Shown here in pieces: positions 7,357 through 57,597 of a stretch of DNA of 64,000 bases (its first letter is position 1; every line of letters starts with the position of its first letter). The notes under the pieces are model-generated. The model was not told where the DNA came from. It ran no database searches and saw nothing but the letters and a program-made list of their open reading frames with translations. The position numbers and the translations under genes were made by a program. The stretch is from Trichosphaerium sp. ATCC 40318 (taxonomy: Eukaryota; Protista; Tubulinea), in NCBI GenBank assembly GCA_038496445.1, contig JALMLS010000520.1, forward strand, positions 186,001 to 250,000, written 5' to 3'.

Positions 7357-8063
7357 ATGACTACAACCAATGAGGTACATATTGTAACACGCTATAAAAA
7401 GCTATTACTCTGTAAATACAGTTGACAACTTCTAAAACGCAGTGCTTTTTATTTCGGCTACCAGTCGAACTATTGCGGGATATTATAGATTTAAGCCCTG
7501 TAATTTATATAATGTGGCCAGAATTATGCAAAAAATCAGCGCTAGTAAGTGGTCGGTTTGATTCTGAGTTCAACAAACACAATAAATGGATATCTTGGAG
7601 TAAGTACATTACCTCGCCTAAAACTCAAAAGGATGGCTATGAAATTAGACGTGAGAGCTATTGGAAGAATGGTCTGCGTCATGGGGAGTGTAAACGATGG
7701 CGTTGGGGTAAATTAATGGAAGAGGTTTGCTATAGTAATGGGATAAAGGAAGGTGAATATACAGCATTTTTTGCGAATGGTAACTTGAAGTGTGTTTGTT
7801 TCTATGTCGATGGTAAGATTGATGGCGAGTATAAACATTGGCACAAGAATGGTAATATTAGAGAAGAGTATGTTTCTGTTTGTGGAAAGAGAGAAGGACA
7901 GCACAAGACGTGGTATCCAGAAGGTACATTGAAGTTTATTTGCGATTACAAGGATGGTAAGAAAGATGGAGAATTGAAAGAGTTTGATTCAGTTGGCCGG
8001 ATGCACGTGATGAAATATGTTGAGGGCTTTAAAACACAAAACGAAAAGTGTTGTCAAATGTAA
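7357..8063 (+). CDS. F-box-like + MORN-variant (YwqK-type) repeat protein
   Basis: Short exon MTTTNE, intron, then LFRLPVELLRDII (F-box-like) and about 5 repeats of type WHKNGNIREE...GKREG. Confidence 0.8.
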
Positions 8064-8598: not shown

Positions 8599-9993
8599 AT
8601 GGGCAATAAACAATCAATTGCTAAAGGGAGCACAACAAGTTCACTACTACTACAGCTGCCAAACGAAGTACTGGCTAGTATATTAATGCAGTGTGAGGTG
8701 AAACAGCTTAGTTCGACAATGCTTGTTAGTAAACACCTCAACGAGCTTGCAAACTATGTGGCAAAGCAAAAGGTGCGTATTGCGGTTGTGTTAACTTTGG
8801 GTCAACGCTTTTGGGCGATTAACTTGATTTAACTGCTGTTGAACCTAATTTTGGGTAGATACTGATAAAGAAACGCGAGAATACAGAAATCAAAGTTTGT
8901 TTTTTAGGAAGTGGAGGTACAGCCATCAAAAACCCTTGTGAAAATGACTAGTATTTAAACTACATATTCTTAGTGACTTTTTTGTAATAACTGGAAATCC
9001 AACTGCAAAGCCACGTGATTTCGAAAAGCACTTTTTTTTTTCACCATGTACGTACTGTCTTTTTTACATTTTGTTAGGTACAGGGAACAAGTCTGCGTTT
9101 ATTATACAATTTGTTGCCAATACATTTGCACGTGCATCTCGAATTATGTTATGTTATTCTAAATAGTTTATATAGCTAACTGAATATGACCCAACAATTG
9201 AAGACGTACGTTTTATTACTTTACGCCAGTGTCTTCGGCTAAAAAGATTGAACTTTTTTTTTATGCATCTTTAATTTCTTTGTCTGCCTATCGATTGGCT
9301 TCAGGTTTTTAACAACTTTGTAGTCTTACAGGTACAGTGGTGTAGTGGTAAACTGATTGAGTTGTTGACTTGAGTTTACTACTGAAGAAAGCACTTTGTG
9401 GTTGATGATATTGCTGTTATGTTTGATATTTTGGATACAGCAGGTCAAGAAGAGGTATATAAAGTGTTGTATTACAGCCTAATTTTTTTTTAGTTTAGTA
9501 GCATGAGATTACAATGGATTCTAGATTGCGAGTGTTTTGTTATAGGTTATTCTATAACAGGTATGGTTACGTTTAATGAATGCAAAAACGACTTGATCCC
9601 TCTTGTGTTGAGAATCAAAGACGTCAAAAACTTTGACAAGGTAACTCCATAATCAACTTAGTACTTACTACATCTGTACTTAACATAAAACTGAGATACC
9701 TGCAGTATTTATAGGAAACAAATGTGACCTGGAAAATAACCGAGAGGTTGACTATGCTGAAGGAAAAGGTAGCAAAACGCGCAGTAATATGTGAACTTCA
9801 AACTAAAACTTAACCTTTAGCGTTGGCTGATGAGTATGGTATACCGTTTTTTGAAACTTCAGCTAAGGATAGAATCAACATCGATGAGGTTATGATATGC
9901 GTTGCAAGAGAGTACTGGAAAAAGATGTTCAAAGAAGAACAAAAGCCAAAGAAAAAAAAGAAAAAAAAGTGGAAGAAGAGTTTGAAAAAGTAG
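8599..9993 (+). CDS. F-box - Ras-family GTPase fusion protein (multi-exon)
   Basis: Exon 1 MGNKQS...LLQLPNEVLASILMQC...LVSKHLNELA (F-box); spliced Ras domain IKVCFLGSGGTGNKS, TEYDPTIEDSYRK, DILDTAGQEEFSSMR, FIGNKCDL, FFETSAK; poly-Lys C-terminus. Confidence 0.85.
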
Positions 9994-10496: not shown

Positions 10497-11317
10497 CTAT
10501 GAATGTTCTTTATAGATTATTCCCAATGACTCCACAAAGTCTTTTGTAAAACCATCCATTTCATGCACTGTAAGTGATTTCAGAGATTGTAAGTGTTTCA
10601 AACAATCCTGTTTAAACCCATGACAACGCACCACAGTTAGTTGTTCTAGGTTTGTTAAGCACTCAAAGTCAATATCTTTTGTATCACAACAAGATAAGTA
10701 TAAGTGTCTGACATTGGTCAAAGCTTTGATCCCTTCTTGCATTGATTGTCCAAAATAAAGTTCAACTGTATGGACATTACCAAGTTGCTCAAGCCATTCA
10801 TTCTTTGGAAAACTAAGGCTTATTGTATGAACATCTTTTAATGCCTTTAATCCTTCTATTGTAATAAAAGGACATCCAAAAATGTTGATTGTGTGAATAC
10901 CCTTGAGTGCCTTTAAAGAAACATCTGTTATGTTTGAGTTGTGCAAGTCAATGTGCTGAAATGTTTTTACTTCTTTTAGTAATGCAAATACACTTTCATC
11001 TGTAGCTCTAACTGGGCCCAAGCTGATGCTTTGAACTCCATAAAGACATGACAAGTTATCTTGAAGCGATGGACAAAAACGAAAACCAATCATTGTGTTT
11101 TCAAGCAAAGGACTTCCCTTGAGAACAATGCAGTCTGAGGTTCTTTCAAAAATATTTGATTGAAGCCAAGATTGTGTCGAATGATATCGTTGAACACGTG
11201 AGAGACTGTAGAAGCTAAAATACGTTGTTTTCTGTTTAAATAACGTAAAATATCAGTAAGTGTCTCTGGCGGAAGCTGACAAACTGAAGTCTTTGATTTC
11301 TGTTGGTTTGTTGCCAT
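10497..11317 (-). pseudogene. F-box + LRR gene with a 1-nt frameshift near 11138 (pseudogene or assembly error)
   Basis: ORF 11317-11090 (F-box QLPPETLTDIL...RHNLGFNQIFLKEP) and ORF 11108-10497 (GIHTINI/VHTISL LRRs) join as LKEP/SDCIVLKGSPLLENTM, collinear with LKQYQDILKIRQYEGIMKNT in the paralog at 54772. Confidence 0.75.
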
Positions 11318-52608: not shown

Positions 52609-54521
52609 ATGGAAAGCCTCAGGTTTCCAATTAATTTGCAAACAGCTTATGAATACTATCTCCAAAAGCATAATGATGATTTTCAACACGTAAAATCAAA
52701 AGAAACACCCATACAGCGTGATATGTTTGATGCTGACGTCATTTCTGCGATTAATACCGTTCTTGCCTCAGCAGAAGCAGAAATGAAGTCCAAGTTAGCC
52801 GCAGTACTCTCAAACTTTACTAAGGCGCTCCCTCGCTCTACTGACAAGCACAAAGACTCGGTCGCTTCAGAGCAAACTAAAAACGTCTTGCGAACAACGT
52901 ACGTGCCACTCTTACCCACAGAATAAGTTATGACATAGCCATGGCACCTGTATCAAGGCGTTCGAACCAGCAAAGTTCAGTTTTCGTTGAACATCATTTT
53001 GTGTTAAACTAACTTTTTTAGACCAACAGCAATTGGCACGTGTTTATTAGACCTCCCAGTAGAAACTATGTGCTTGATTCTACAATACACATCTACGGCA
53101 AGGTACAGTGCTGCACAGACATGTAAATCATTCGCAGATATTATACATCATGTAATTGGCTATGTCACTGCAAAAGTAAAGCCACATGATGCACTTGCTA
53201 TTCGTCACTACAAAGGTAGGTTGTAACATCTTATACAACATATTTGTAGATAATGATTTGTATATTTACCTTTCTTCTAGGTGTGATGACAAACACTTTG
53301 ATAACTGTTGATGCCATGTACAACAATACAACACATTGGTTTTCAGGATGTAAAAAACTTGCCTTTCTTTATAGTTTAAAAGAAGTTCAACATCTTTCTG
53401 GTATTCACAGTATCGATGTTTCACATACAAATATATCACATGAATCCATCAAAGGGCTTGCTGGTGTACATACAATTAATCTTAAACATACTCCAGCGAC
53501 AAATGAAAGCATTGCGTATCTAAAGGGTGTACATACTATTAATCTTACTTCCACCAAAGTTTCTGATGTAAATGCCCTTCAAGGCGTTCACACATTAGTC
53601 CTCCGTTGTACTTGGATAGACGATGAAGGTATAAAGGAACTAAAAGGTGTACATACAATTGATCTTAGCAATTGTAGCTTTATATCAGATAAAGGTTTGA
53701 AAGGCCTTGTAGGAGTACATACAATTAATCTTCATGGAACCAATGTGAAAAACCAAGGTCTGGCTTACCTAAAGGGTGTACATAGTATTAATGTTAGTAG
53801 CTGCTCAAGTATATCAGATCAAGGTATAAGGGAACTAAAAGGTGTACACACCATTGACCTCTTTGATACCTCAGTATCAGATAAAGGTGTCAAAGCACTT
53901 GCTGGCGTTCATACCATTAACTTGAGTGGCACTAAAATAACAGATATAGGCATTCAAAAGCTTAAAGGAGTTCATATCATCGACCTGGCTGAAACTAAAG
54001 TCACTGATGAAGGAATAAAAGCACTCAAAGGTGTTCATAATATTAACCTGAGTGGGACATCAGTAGCAGATGAAGGTGTGAAAGCGCTTGCTGGTGTTCA
54101 TACTATTTACCTTAGTGGTACTAAAGTAACAGACAAACGCATTCATGCACTCAAAGGTGTTCACACAATTGATCTTTCCAATACTAGTATAACAGGTAAA
54201 ACTCTATCTTCATTGGCTGGTGTTCACACCATTGATCTTTCAAAATGTCCCATTGTTAATGGTCTATCAGCGCTCAAAGGTGTTCATACAATTTACTTGC
54301 AATATACAGACATTACAGACAACGATCTAAAAGCTTTAGCTGGTGTTCATACAATTGATCTAACTGGCTGCATTTCTGTTACAGATAAAGGCGCTATGGC
54401 ACTTGCTGGCAGTCTGCGTAAGATTTCAATTGTTGAATCTAAAATAGGTTATTATACATTAGATAAACTTCCATGTGTAGCGCTTTTTGATGGCCTTGGT
54501 GGCTGGGATACGAGAGTGTAG
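52609..54521 (+). CDS. F-box + LRR (GVHTIDLS-type, about 16 repeats) protein
   Basis: Exon 1 helical domain, exon 2 LLDLPVETMCLILQY...AQTCKSFADIIHHVIGY (F-box), exon 3 with 21/23-aa LRRs TDEGIKALKGVHTIxL. Confidence 0.88.
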
Positions 54522-54771
54522 TTAGAATCAAGCCCTACTTTGAAGAGCCTTAATTATGCTGCTCAATAAAGTTGTCAAACTACGAATATTTTTTATTCTT
54601 TTGTAAAAATCAATGTGAATACCATTCTGTTGTTCGAATCTTTTACAAATAAATGGTTAAGCTTTTGTAGGTTGTTCTAGAGTTGATTCATGTGGCAGTA
54701 AACTAGCGTTGACTCAGACTTTTTACAATATGAGAAAACACGTGAGCCCAAATAACGGACCACAACAAATC

Positions 54772-56106
54772 ATGAGTTTTTCTTGTTTATTAGTAGAAAG
54801 CGCACTAGAATATTATCGTAAGCGCCACGCTGAACGGTTCGGTAAAGTAATGGCAATACAACCCCAAACAGTCATGGCAAAGGTAGAAAGTGTAATTTCG
54901 AAGTTAAATATGAGTATTGCATCACAGCTCGATCAAGTTCTTTCAAAACTCTCAGATTCAATTGGTTCTACTCAAGCTAGCCAGTTAACACCTTCATCTA
55001 ACGTTGAATATCACAAGCACAAAAGAAAAGAGATGTACATTAAAAAAAAAGAGTGTAACAGTAAACAACCAATGCCACGTGAAGAACTGAATATTATCAC
55101 TTTTCTCCCACCTGAAGTTATTTCAAATATTCTAGAGTACACAGATCAAAAAGGTAGATTTTCTGTTGCTCAATCGTGTCGCCTTATGGCTGATCTCATT
55201 CATCATGTTGTTGGATATAAACATGTTTATCTCAAGCAATACCAAGATATTTTAAAGATAAGACAGTACGAGGGTATTATGAAAAACACCGTTATTCAGA
55301 TGGATGTGTGGTATATGAATGATGATTCAACAGTATATTCGTTACTATCAGGGTGTTGTAAACTACAACTATCAAGATATAACAGACATATTCTTGACGG
55401 TGATCTGCAAGAAATAGCAAGTGCAAACCAAGTTAGCTTTATGGATCTTTCCGGGGGATCCAGAAGTCTTACAGATGAAGGTATTAAAGCACTTGCTGGT
55501 ATTCATACAATTAACCTGCGAGAGTGTAAGTTTGTGACAGACGAAGGTGTTAAAGCGCTTGCTGGAGTTCATACCATTGACCTTAGCCACTGTATTCAAG
55601 TTACTGACGAAGGCATTAAAGCACTTGCTGGAGTACATACCATAAATCTGAATGATAACTATATGTTGACCGATGAAGGTATAAAAGCTCTTGTGGGTGT
55701 ACATACAATTAATCTAAGGAACTGTGAAAATGTATCTGATGAAGGTATTAAGATGTTAAAAGGTGTACACGAAATTAGCCTCAATTATACTTCAGTCACT
55801 GATGAAGGTGTCAAAGCACTTGCTGGCGTTCATGCTATTGACCTTTCCAATACATTTGTTACGGATGAAGGCATTAAAGCGCTTGCAGGAGTACATACAA
55901 TCCATATTATTGGTTGTGACAACGTGACAGATAAAGGTATCACTTCATTGAACGGTGTTCATACTATTAGTATTGGCAGAAACGTGACAGATAAAGGTGT
56001 TGAAGCATTGGAACGAGTTCATACCATTTTCTTTTCTCATGAAAATACCAACATATCAGCATTGTGTATTGCCAGGCTAAAAAAAGCCTCAGTGAATGTG
56101 ATTTAG
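54772..56106 (+). CDS. F-box + LRR (about 9 repeats) protein, tandem paralog of 52609-54521
   Basis: ITFLPPEVISNILEY...AQSCRLMADLIHHVVGY; repeats VTDEGIKALAGVHTI; N-terminal ALEYYRKRH matches AYEYYLQKH of the paralog. Start could be 54730. Confidence 0.88.
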   Translation: MSFSCLLVESALEYYRKRHAERFGKVMAIQPQTVMAKVESVISKLNMSIASQLDQVLSKLSDSIGSTQASQLTPSSNVEYHKHKRKEMYIKKKECNSKQPMPREELNIITFLPPEVISNILEYTDQKGRFSVAQSCRLMADLIHHVVGYKHVYLKQYQDILKIRQYEGIMKNTVIQMDVWYMNDDSTVYSLLSGCCKLQLSRYNRHILDGDLQEIASANQVSFMDLSGGSRSLTDEGIKALAGIHTINLRECKFVTDEGVKALAGVHTIDLSHCIQVTDEGIKALAGVHTINLNDNYMLTDEGIKALVGVHTINLRNCENVSDEGIKMLKGVHEISLNYTSVTDEGVKALAGVHAIDLSNTFVTDEGIKALAGVHTIHIIGCDNVTDKGITSLNGVHTISIGRNVTDKGVEALERVHTIFFSHENTNISALCIARLKKASVNVI

Positions 56107-56367
56107 GTACTGGCCCAACACTGACAATAAACGTGTTATTCAAGAAATCACGTGTTTTGTTTTACAAAAAAGTCGTCTTGTTTGCAGTTCAACAAGATTG
56201 AGCTTATGAATGATGGTCACATTTCAACTAATACAAGTATTTGGCCTACAAAGTCGCTCAAAGTCTACAACACGTGGACAAGCAGCTTTACACCTCAGTC
56301 GGGAAATACTAGCGCCTGCTTGACACATTCAACATCCATTTGGAGCGTTGGAAGAGATTTTAGTAAA

Positions 56368-57597
56368 ATGGACGAACCAAATCTGTGGCAGCTTCCTACT
56401 GAAGTTACTGTTTTAATATTGGACAACCTACACTTCTCAGACCTATATGCGTTTAGTTCTGTGAGTTTACACGCTTTATCTGTATTTAACATTGTACAAA
56501 GCATTGTCGTACGTTAATACTACATAAGAAACACGTTAACCGCGTCTGACAGTAGTTTTAGGTTTCAAAGAAAGTGTATAAAAGAAAGATATTACCAGGG
56601 GTTCATTCTCGCGTTGTGGGCATGTGTGTGCTCTCAAAAGGCGAGGTATAAGCGCATACCTTTTTTAATGGATGAAAGACGTTAACGAGTCAAGTTTAGA
56701 TCGTCGTTGTTGATCATAATGCTCACAAAATAGGAATCATTAAAGATGATAGATACACAACCTTGATAGACAGAAACACAAAACATACAACAGACGTCTA
56801 CAATGATGGACCTTTTAAACAAGCGTGTGCGTATCGTTTTGTTCTGTTCTGTTTCACGTGGGTTTGGCTCACTTTTGTTATTTTGTTGTAGGCTTGTATT
56901 ACCCCACAGGCTGTGTGGTTGACTCTGATGATAATGTTATTATTAGTGATAGATCCCATCATACAATAAGAAAGCTTGACTTGAAAAATCGAATCATATC
57001 AACAATAGCAGGGAAGCCATGTACACAAGGAAGTATTGAACGCAGCTGCTTGAGGTTTGCTAGTATTTGCAAGGGCATAAATGATAGTATACTCATATGT
57101 GATCAAGTTAATGGTGCCATTAGAAGCATGAATGCTGAAGGCCAAATTAATACCGTAGCTGACATAAAAAGAGGTGATTTTGACTACACCAAGTTTCAGT
57201 CTTCTATTCCATATCCACGACGTATTGCTTTTTGTCCCCGAACTGGTGATATGTAAGTTAATATATGTATTTTCGCTTATGAAGTTATAGATACTTTGCA
57301 GTTGCCAAACTTGTTATAAAACTGAGTAATGGGAAGCAAACACTTATTTATAAACACAATTTACCAATATTTGGGATTGCTGTGGAAAGAACGGGTGATG
57401 TGTTGTTTGGATCTGGACGAGATAAGGGAGATAAGGCTAAACAAGATTGCATATTTAGAGTATACACAAGGATGAAAGGGTATCCAGTACTCCCTCTGAC
57501 CTTATCCAATCCAATAGAGAACGTTTCAGGGTTGTATTATTATGATGGTATTCTGTATGTTGGCGCAGGTGAAGAAGCCTGTACAATAAAGCTGTAG
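56368..57597 (+). CDS. F-box + NHL/beta-propeller repeat protein (multi-exon)
   Basis: MDEPNLWQLPTEVTVLILDNL (F-box); GLYYPTGCVVDSDDNVIISDRSHHTIRKLDL...ISTIAG (NHL). Confidence 0.82.

Follow-up and report, generated by a model that had tools for sequence, protein, structure and literature searches.

An F-box–Ras/Rap-type GTPase fusion gene with a lengthened P-loop in Trichosphaerium sp. ATCC 40318

Small GTPases joined to ubiquitin-ligase docking modules

According to the N. fowleri genome paper (Herman et al. 2021), Ras-superfamily GTPases of Naegleria carry the F-box more often than any other additional domain (PMC8296547 supplement, which also cites RhoBTB). The F-box fusions of this genus involve Rab-like, Rho, Ran and G-alpha proteins, while Ras is found there with BTB and not with an F-box (PMC8296547), and the authors infer GTPase-dependent ubiquitination for the GTPases that carry F-box or BTB domains (PMC8296547 supplement). 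A euglenozoan protein, TbFRP, combines FYVE, F-box and Ras-like GTPase domains (PMC3593210), and the fusion of ARF-family proteins to F-box or BTB domains has been described as a recurrent recruitment into ubiquitin circuits (10.1101/2020.10.31.363457). Among animal proteins, the SCF substrate receptor FBXO4 (Fbx4) binds TRF1 via a GTPase-like domain (PMC7086354).

The gene described here occupies positions 8599-9993 (+) of the window, by which we mean the whole 64,000-nt stretch analyzed (positions 186,001 to 250,000 of contig JALMLS010000520.1, assembly GCA_038496445.1). It is a real, spliced protein-coding gene whose product is a 259-residue F-box protein with a Ras/Rap-type G domain as its sole further domain. 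With moderate confidence, we favor the reading that this protein acts as a membrane-held SCF substrate receptor recruiting proteins that recognize Ras or Rap.

Like the Naegleria fusions, the gene places an N-terminal F-box directly upstream of a Ras-superfamily G domain, and we liken it to those genes, which are lineage-specific, multi-copy and subject to birth-and-death evolution. Unlike the Rab-like, Rho and Ran types of Naegleria, its G domain appears to be of the Ras/Rap type (YDPTIEDSYRK; exons 7 and 9 are nearest to Rap1, M-Ras and KRas). With the F-box exon as query, a full HMMER search against 1.84 billion representatives returned two matches, a protein of 2511 aa and P0002, a complete ORF of 244 aa from an MMETSP marine-protist transcript. 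Since neither is traceable to Naegleria in this library, which is without taxonomy, the fusion in the window is probably independent of those in Naegleria. The 2511-aa match was set aside as an unrelated plant-type F-box/LRR/FBD protein. A Naegleria gruberi F-box-Rab-like sequence contains MGNKQPS a few residues past its annotated start (PMC8296547 supplementary file 10); its resemblance to the MGNKQS start of the window protein and the MGNKQQ start of P0002 may be a coincidence or may reflect a recurrent myristoylated start.

With TbFRP, the window protein shares an F-box placed before a Ras-like G domain in one polypeptide, together with membrane targeting, predicted for the window protein, by an extra device and not by a CaaX motif. 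TbFRP, a protein of 64 kDa, is anchored by a PI3P-binding FYVE domain, whereas the window protein lacks FYVE and is predicted to rely instead on a myristoylation-type start and a polybasic tail. The GTPase-like domain of FBXO4 is devoid of G motifs, whereas the window protein retains G2-G5. RhoBTB, which works with Cul3, and Rab40, which works with Cul5 through a SOCS box, likewise fuse a small GTPase domain to a cullin-ligase docking module; they differ from the window protein in that module (BTB or SOCS box), in the cullin and in the GTPase subfamily.

The preliminary description of this DNA drew a parallel to RhoBTB/Cul3 and Rab40/Cul5, with Cul1 as the cullin presumed here, and counted an architecture already described as a family against its own reading. 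To a large extent this is the case: the combination of an F-box with a small GTPase is already published for Naegleria (PMC8296547), Euglenozoa (PMC3593210) and the ARF family (10.1101/2020.10.31.363457), and given these fusions the Cul1-using parallel is not new in kind. The window gene is a further example of an F-box–GTPase fusion, and the concept is not new. The gene is set apart by an F-box that is paired with a Ras/Rap-type domain in a protein lacking FYVE, by the myristoylation-type start with a basic tail, and by a one-residue insertion in the P-loop with all other G motifs intact. A myristoylation-type start is uncommon in the Ras family, and for Rheb it was reported as new in 2018 (PMC5869587). 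Our literature search found no paper on an F-box together with a pseudoGTPase.

Gene structure, domains and neighboring genes

The gene model, obtained by three-frame translation and splice-site reading, comprises nine exons on the plus strand with a spliced coding sequence of 780 nt (259 codons and a stop) and no internal stop. The locus is eukaryotic DNA of 36-37% G+C with short introns, seven of them GT-AG and one, intron 3, GC-AG. Exon 1 (8599-8772) encodes the MGNKQS start, an N-myristoylation-type motif, and the F-box at residues 17-52; an in-frame stop lies four codons 5' of the ATG at 8599, and MGNKQS is therefore the likely N-terminus. Exons 2 to 4 were assigned by direct reading. Exon 2 (8859-8916) holds a short linker, strand β1 and the first half of the P-loop (…KVCFLGSGG), exon 3 (9078-9127) the second half of the P-loop (TGNKS, with an extra Asn) and helix α1, and exon 4 (9176-9205) the switch I/effector loop (LTEYDPTIED), which corresponds to YDPILED of P0002. 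Exon 5 (9324-9331) is an 8-nt micro-exon, TCTTACAG, with GT-AG flanks, which supplies Ser-Tyr-Arg, and YDPTIED|SYR|K is assembled from exons 4, 5 and 6. The remaining exons encode β2/β3 and G3 (DTAGQEE; exon 6, 9388-9454), the end of switch II with α2 to α3 (exon 7, 9494-9640), β5 and G4 (GNKCD; exon 8, 9696-9768), and G5 (ETSAK), α5 and the polybasic tail without CaaX, followed by the stop (exon 9, 9821-9993). A tblastn search with all exons found no second copy of the gene in the 64-kb window.

Two introns deserve comment. Both ends of intron 2 bear the heptamer GGTACAG (8916-8922 and 9077-9083), so that any cut inside it yields an identical mRNA and the spliced product is unambiguous. Intron 3 (9128-9175, 48 nt, GCACGT…ATATAG) contains in-frame stops and begins with a weak GC donor, and no canonical GT donor that maintains the frame was found for it. 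GGTACAG occurs also at the intron 5 donor (9331-9337). Three of the eight donors are of the GTAC type (GTACAG twice, GTACGT once), and from its third letter on, the GC donor GCACGT resembles them. The preliminary description had placed the junction of exons 1 and 2 at 8772/8860; the donor at 8772 stands, and exon 2 begins at 8859, one position earlier.

Domain searches were run exon by exon. Exon 1 matches the Pfam F-box families PF00646 (E 4.6e-7, 29.9 bits against a cut-off of 20.5) and PF12937 (E 1.1e-6, 28.8 bits against 24.3). The F-box is preceded by 16 residues only, the whole extension before the G domain measures 65 residues, and in the nine-exon frame the Ras domain begins about 10 residues after the F-box. 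Exons 6, 7, 8 and 9 match the Ras profile PF00071 colinearly, at profile positions 39-60 (E 0.002), 61-101, 105-128 (E 3e-4) and 130-159; their scores of 18.2, 15.7, 20.9 and 21.0 bits each lie below the cut-off of 21.6 and are those of single-exon pieces of the domain. In comparison with solved structures (PDB), exon 7 matched Rap1A, Rap1B and M-Ras best, and exon 9 matched KRas4B, its polylysine region included; the F-box exon, searched against the PDB as a single sequence, gave chance matches to Lac repressor only. FYVE, BTB and SOCS box domains were not found in the exons of the gene with Pfam.

In the conceptual product, the G motifs begin at residues 75 (GSGGTGNKS), 98 (YDPTIED), 123 (DTAGQ), 186 (NKCD) and 216 (SAK). 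A pattern search detected no canonical P-loop, GxxxxGK[ST], in the protein; the P-loop GSGGTGNKS, which spans intron 2, has an Asn inserted between Gly and Lys and is one residue too long, and no alternative donor or acceptor gives back the canonical form. G2-G5 are canonical: YDPTIEDSY with the conserved Thr, DTAGQ with the Gln61-equivalent kept, NKCD and SAK. Judged from its sequence, the G domain is of the Ras/Rap type with a G1 that is one residue too long. The MGNKQS start conforms to the M-G-x-x-x-S/T rule for N-myristoylation, and the C-terminus (…KKSLKK) contains 15 Lys/Arg among its last 24 residues, with neither a Cys nor a CaaX motif. K-Ras4B/Rap1 and the window protein have in common the effector loop, DTAGQEE, NKCD, SAK and a polylysine region at the C-terminus; unlike K-Ras4B/Rap1, the window protein has no CaaX Cys and adds one P-loop residue and a 65-residue F-box extension with an MG start. 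All the sequence features listed in the preliminary description (MGNKQS, the F-box, YDPTIEDSYRK, DTAGQEE, the long P-loop and the Cys-less end) are present at 8599-9993.

F-box receptors with differing binding domains are abundant in the window. In a convergent neighbor at 11317-10497 (-), an F-box exon (PF12937, E 3e-7) precedes an LRR region (LRR_4, E 1.5e-8); the stop of this neighbor lies 503 nt from that of the F-box–Ras gene. Just upstream of the latter, at 7422-8063 (+), a 213-aa ORF carries MORN repeats (PF07661, E 1e-12); its N-terminus, LPVELLRDIIDL, looks F-box-like by eye, with no Pfam call at E 0.001. Further F-box/LRR genes lie at 53253-56517 (+), among them a 422-aa LRR ORF and a 465-aa ORF that combines an F-box-like motif (E 4e-5) with LRR_6 repeats of the 'GVHTIDLS' type, and another F-box-like stretch is located at 56383-56472 (+).

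Transcripts, the paralogue and the relative P0002

Only one public run, X1, holds DNA of this locus; it consists of assembled contigs whose kind is not on record, and since these contigs skip introns, the run behaves as RNA. One of them, a contig of 787 nt, is about 90% identical to the F-box–Ras gene and represents the mRNA of a paralogue. Its first 128 letters reach upstream of 8700, past the start codon, after which it aligns on 8700-8772 with a junction exactly at 8772, the end of exon 1. Between 8772 and 8886 it has 39 letters where the window gene has 27, so the linker of the paralogue is four codons longer, in frame. The next pieces are 8886-8914, 9076-9126, 9177-9204, the eight letters TCATACAG, which are the paralogue's equivalent of micro-exon 5 between its equivalents of exons 4 and 6, and 9401-9454. 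The join 8914/9076 becomes 8916/9078, with GT..AG, when the cut is shifted by two, and the contig also has the equivalent of the exon 3/4 junction, which in the window gene crosses the GC-AG intron 3. After 9454 follow exactly 223 unaligned letters, the sum of exons 7 and 8 plus 3 nt, and then 9824-9961. The piece 9076-9126 aligns without gaps, and the extra P-loop residue is thus common to the paralogue in length.

In this close paralogue, the F-box and Ras exons are joined on one spliced RNA with the modeled junctions. The expectation that both parts share a transcript is thereby borne out in the paralogue, at about 90% identity, and not at the exact locus, where no transcript crosses 8772/8859. 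That no contig of the exact locus in run X1 spans this junction is what speaks for a wrong gene model, in which the F-box exon and the Ras exons would belong to separate genes. We consider such a split extremely improbable: both parts stand on the paralogue mRNA contig, P0002 carries the two domains in one complete transcript ORF, and a Ras-only product would be without an available start codon. The Ras part has no start of its own, and on tracing back none is met before residue 30, inside exon 1; as no Met separates the exon 1 region from the G domain, translation cannot yield the Ras part by itself. Exon 9 adds a signature of coding constraint on the plus frame, as third codon positions account for 9 of its 13 listed differences from the paralogue (p 0.009), and the ratio of synonymous to non-synonymous changes is 9 to 4.

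In run X1, one small assembly, no sense transcript of the window locus itself was seen and no exact sense contig covers exons 1-6, but one small run of assembled contigs cannot prove absence of expression. The exact contigs of the locus in this run are a 3' contig at 9939-10150+ and a spliced contig of 369 nt, 100% identical, made up of 9496-9644, 9700-9802 and 9845-9961 with CT..AC joints. The latter corresponds to an antisense transcript over exons 7-9 (9496-9961, minus strand) with GT-AG introns at 9699-9645 (55 nt) and 9844-9803 (42 nt), whose minus-strand donor and acceptor sequences are good. A reading of the CT..AC joints as sense introns was rejected, given the good minus-strand GT-AG introns and the break that it would cause in the Ras sense frame. 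No long minus-strand reading frame was found in the 369-nt contig, and the antisense RNA may represent an extended 3' UTR belonging to the convergent F-box-LRR gene that ends at 10497.

These data also bear on the possibility that the window copy is silent or decaying and still open merely through its youth, the 90% paralogue elsewhere being the expressed gene. Such a state would agree with the missing exact sense contig over exons 1-6 in run X1, the antisense-spliced transcript over exons 7-9, the GC donor of intron 3 and the non-canonical P-loop. The limited size of the run, however, deprives the first of these of the power to prove absence, and the P-loop length is common to the expressed paralogue. 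Moreover, all nine exons are open, the 8-nt micro-exon included, all eight splice-site pairs are kept, and 4 non-synonymous changes among 13 differences are hard to reconcile with one neutral lineage (p 0.02). We therefore judge a silent copy unlikely, and the reading of the locus as a real, protein-coding gene is retained in what follows.

P0002 is the sole match of similar length and the sole one with the same layout among the 1.84 billion representatives. P0002 starts with MGNKQ (MGNKQQ) and continues with an F-box (E 2e-6), a Ras domain (E 4e-10; 39.9 bits, above the Pfam cut-off) and a poly-K tail. MAFFT put the short exon pieces in wrong places on P0002, and exon-wise BLASTP was used: exons 1, 8 (on P0002 residues 161-185) and 9 align colinearly at 51%, 48% and 41% identity, and exons 2, 4 and 7 also lie in order. 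Compared with solved structures, the G domain of P0002 is closest to Rap2A, Ras, M-Ras and KRas among the matches listed, and the best 60 of 388 PDB matches are all Ras/Rap/M-Ras/Rheb-type chains. FBXO4 is not among these best 60 of 388, and no sequence relationship to it beyond the F-box was detected. A structure search in the Atlas placed P0002 on KRas/RSR1 (TM 0.6), and a feature search there, based on language-model features, placed it nearest to FBXO4 clusters at 0.83, which is under the 0.9 level and serves as a lead only. AlphaFold modeling of P0002 as a single sequence gave a pLDDT of 40, too poor to use. A word search with P0002 retrieved P0002 alone, and a metagenome scan with exon 1 yielded no relative.

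The G domain of P0002 is degenerate, having lost the P-loop and helix α1 segment and all of G3, G4 and G5. At residues 70-90, about 18 residues are missing, equivalent to window exon 3 with the P-loop Lys/Ser and helix α1; this gap reflects either a genuine deletion, in a pseudo-GTPase, or an alternatively spliced form. At the level of sequence, the family conserves its layout (MG start, F-box, Ras fold, basic tail) and not its nucleotide chemistry.

Proposed function and significance

On the reading that we favor, based on domain logic and the FBXO4 precedent, the F-box would dock on Skp1 of a Skp1-Cul1 ligase, and an N-terminal myristate together with the C-terminal polybasic patch would anchor the protein at the acidic inner membrane leaflet. 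Anchoring by myristate and a polybasic patch is well known for other proteins. The Ras fold, about 10 residues after the F-box, would expose the conserved switch I/effector face, to which Ras- and Rap-recognizing proteins (effectors, GAPs and GEFs) might bind and so become ubiquitinated. The suggestion in the preliminary description of an SCF adaptor that binds through its Ras fold is reasonable as a putative mechanism. The observations point in different directions as to nucleotide: intact NKxD and SAK motifs, which contact guanine only, argue that nucleotide is still bound by the window copy in spite of the inserted Asn, and the degenerate P0002 argues that nucleotide binding is dispensable in the family. 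With the P-loop lengthened, nucleotide binding may be lost, and hence any GTP-dependent shape of the effector face.

Alternatively, the protein could be a signaling GTPase whose F-box governs its own abundance, through SCF self-ubiquitination and turnover, or provides simple localization, and does not deliver substrates. Self-turnover has been proposed for TbFRP, whose F-box was associated with fast proteolysis and a dynamic pool of the protein (PMC3593210), and the window copy retains G2-G5 and the Gln61-equivalent as a working switch would. Yet the same copy carries the P-loop insertion, and P0002 keeps the F-box, the MGNKQ start and the poly-K tail but lost its G motifs, which together suggest that the conserved part is the scaffold and not the switch chemistry. 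Self-regulation of this kind is possible in our view, and we hold it doubtful.

A different target is also conceivable for the substrate receptor, namely that an expanding set of F-box-tagged GTPase look-alikes acts as decoy or guard receptors, luring bacterial or viral effectors of Ras, Rap and Rac to the proteasome. The effector loop shows the canonical Ras sequence instead of a variable surface, and the sole measured comparison, that of exon 9 with the paralogue, is indicative of purifying selection; there is no direct evidence for a decoy role and no sign of diversifying selection. We thus find this role improbable, even though other F-box genes in the window carry LRR domains, the family has birth-and-death features (a 90% paralogue and degenerate relatives), and roles where organism and environment meet have been suggested for the F-box Rab-like genes of Naegleria (PMC8296547).

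For the membrane-held SCF receptor that we favor, a bolder and rather unlikely version is a nucleotide-gated, membrane-resident E3 receptor within a family of switchable or decoy degraders, possibly directed against pathogen effectors that target small GTPases. If this were true, GTP would still be bound despite the long P-loop, and Ras/Rap effectors or regulators would be offered to SCF by the GTP-loaded protein alone, so that the timing of ubiquitination at the membrane would be set directly by a switch of the Ras type.

Fusions of GTPases to cullin-docking modules arose repeatedly, as illustrated by RhoBTB, Rab40, FBXO4 and the Naegleria, euglenozoan and ARF-family cases. FBXO4 apart, we know of no F-box–GTPase fusion with a known target. 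The window copy stands at an intermediate stage, with a canonical effector loop and guanine-contact motifs, the P-loop as the sole altered motif and close relatives that are fully degenerate, which makes this a convenient family for asking whether such proteins are GTP-gated ligases or nucleotide-free scaffolds.
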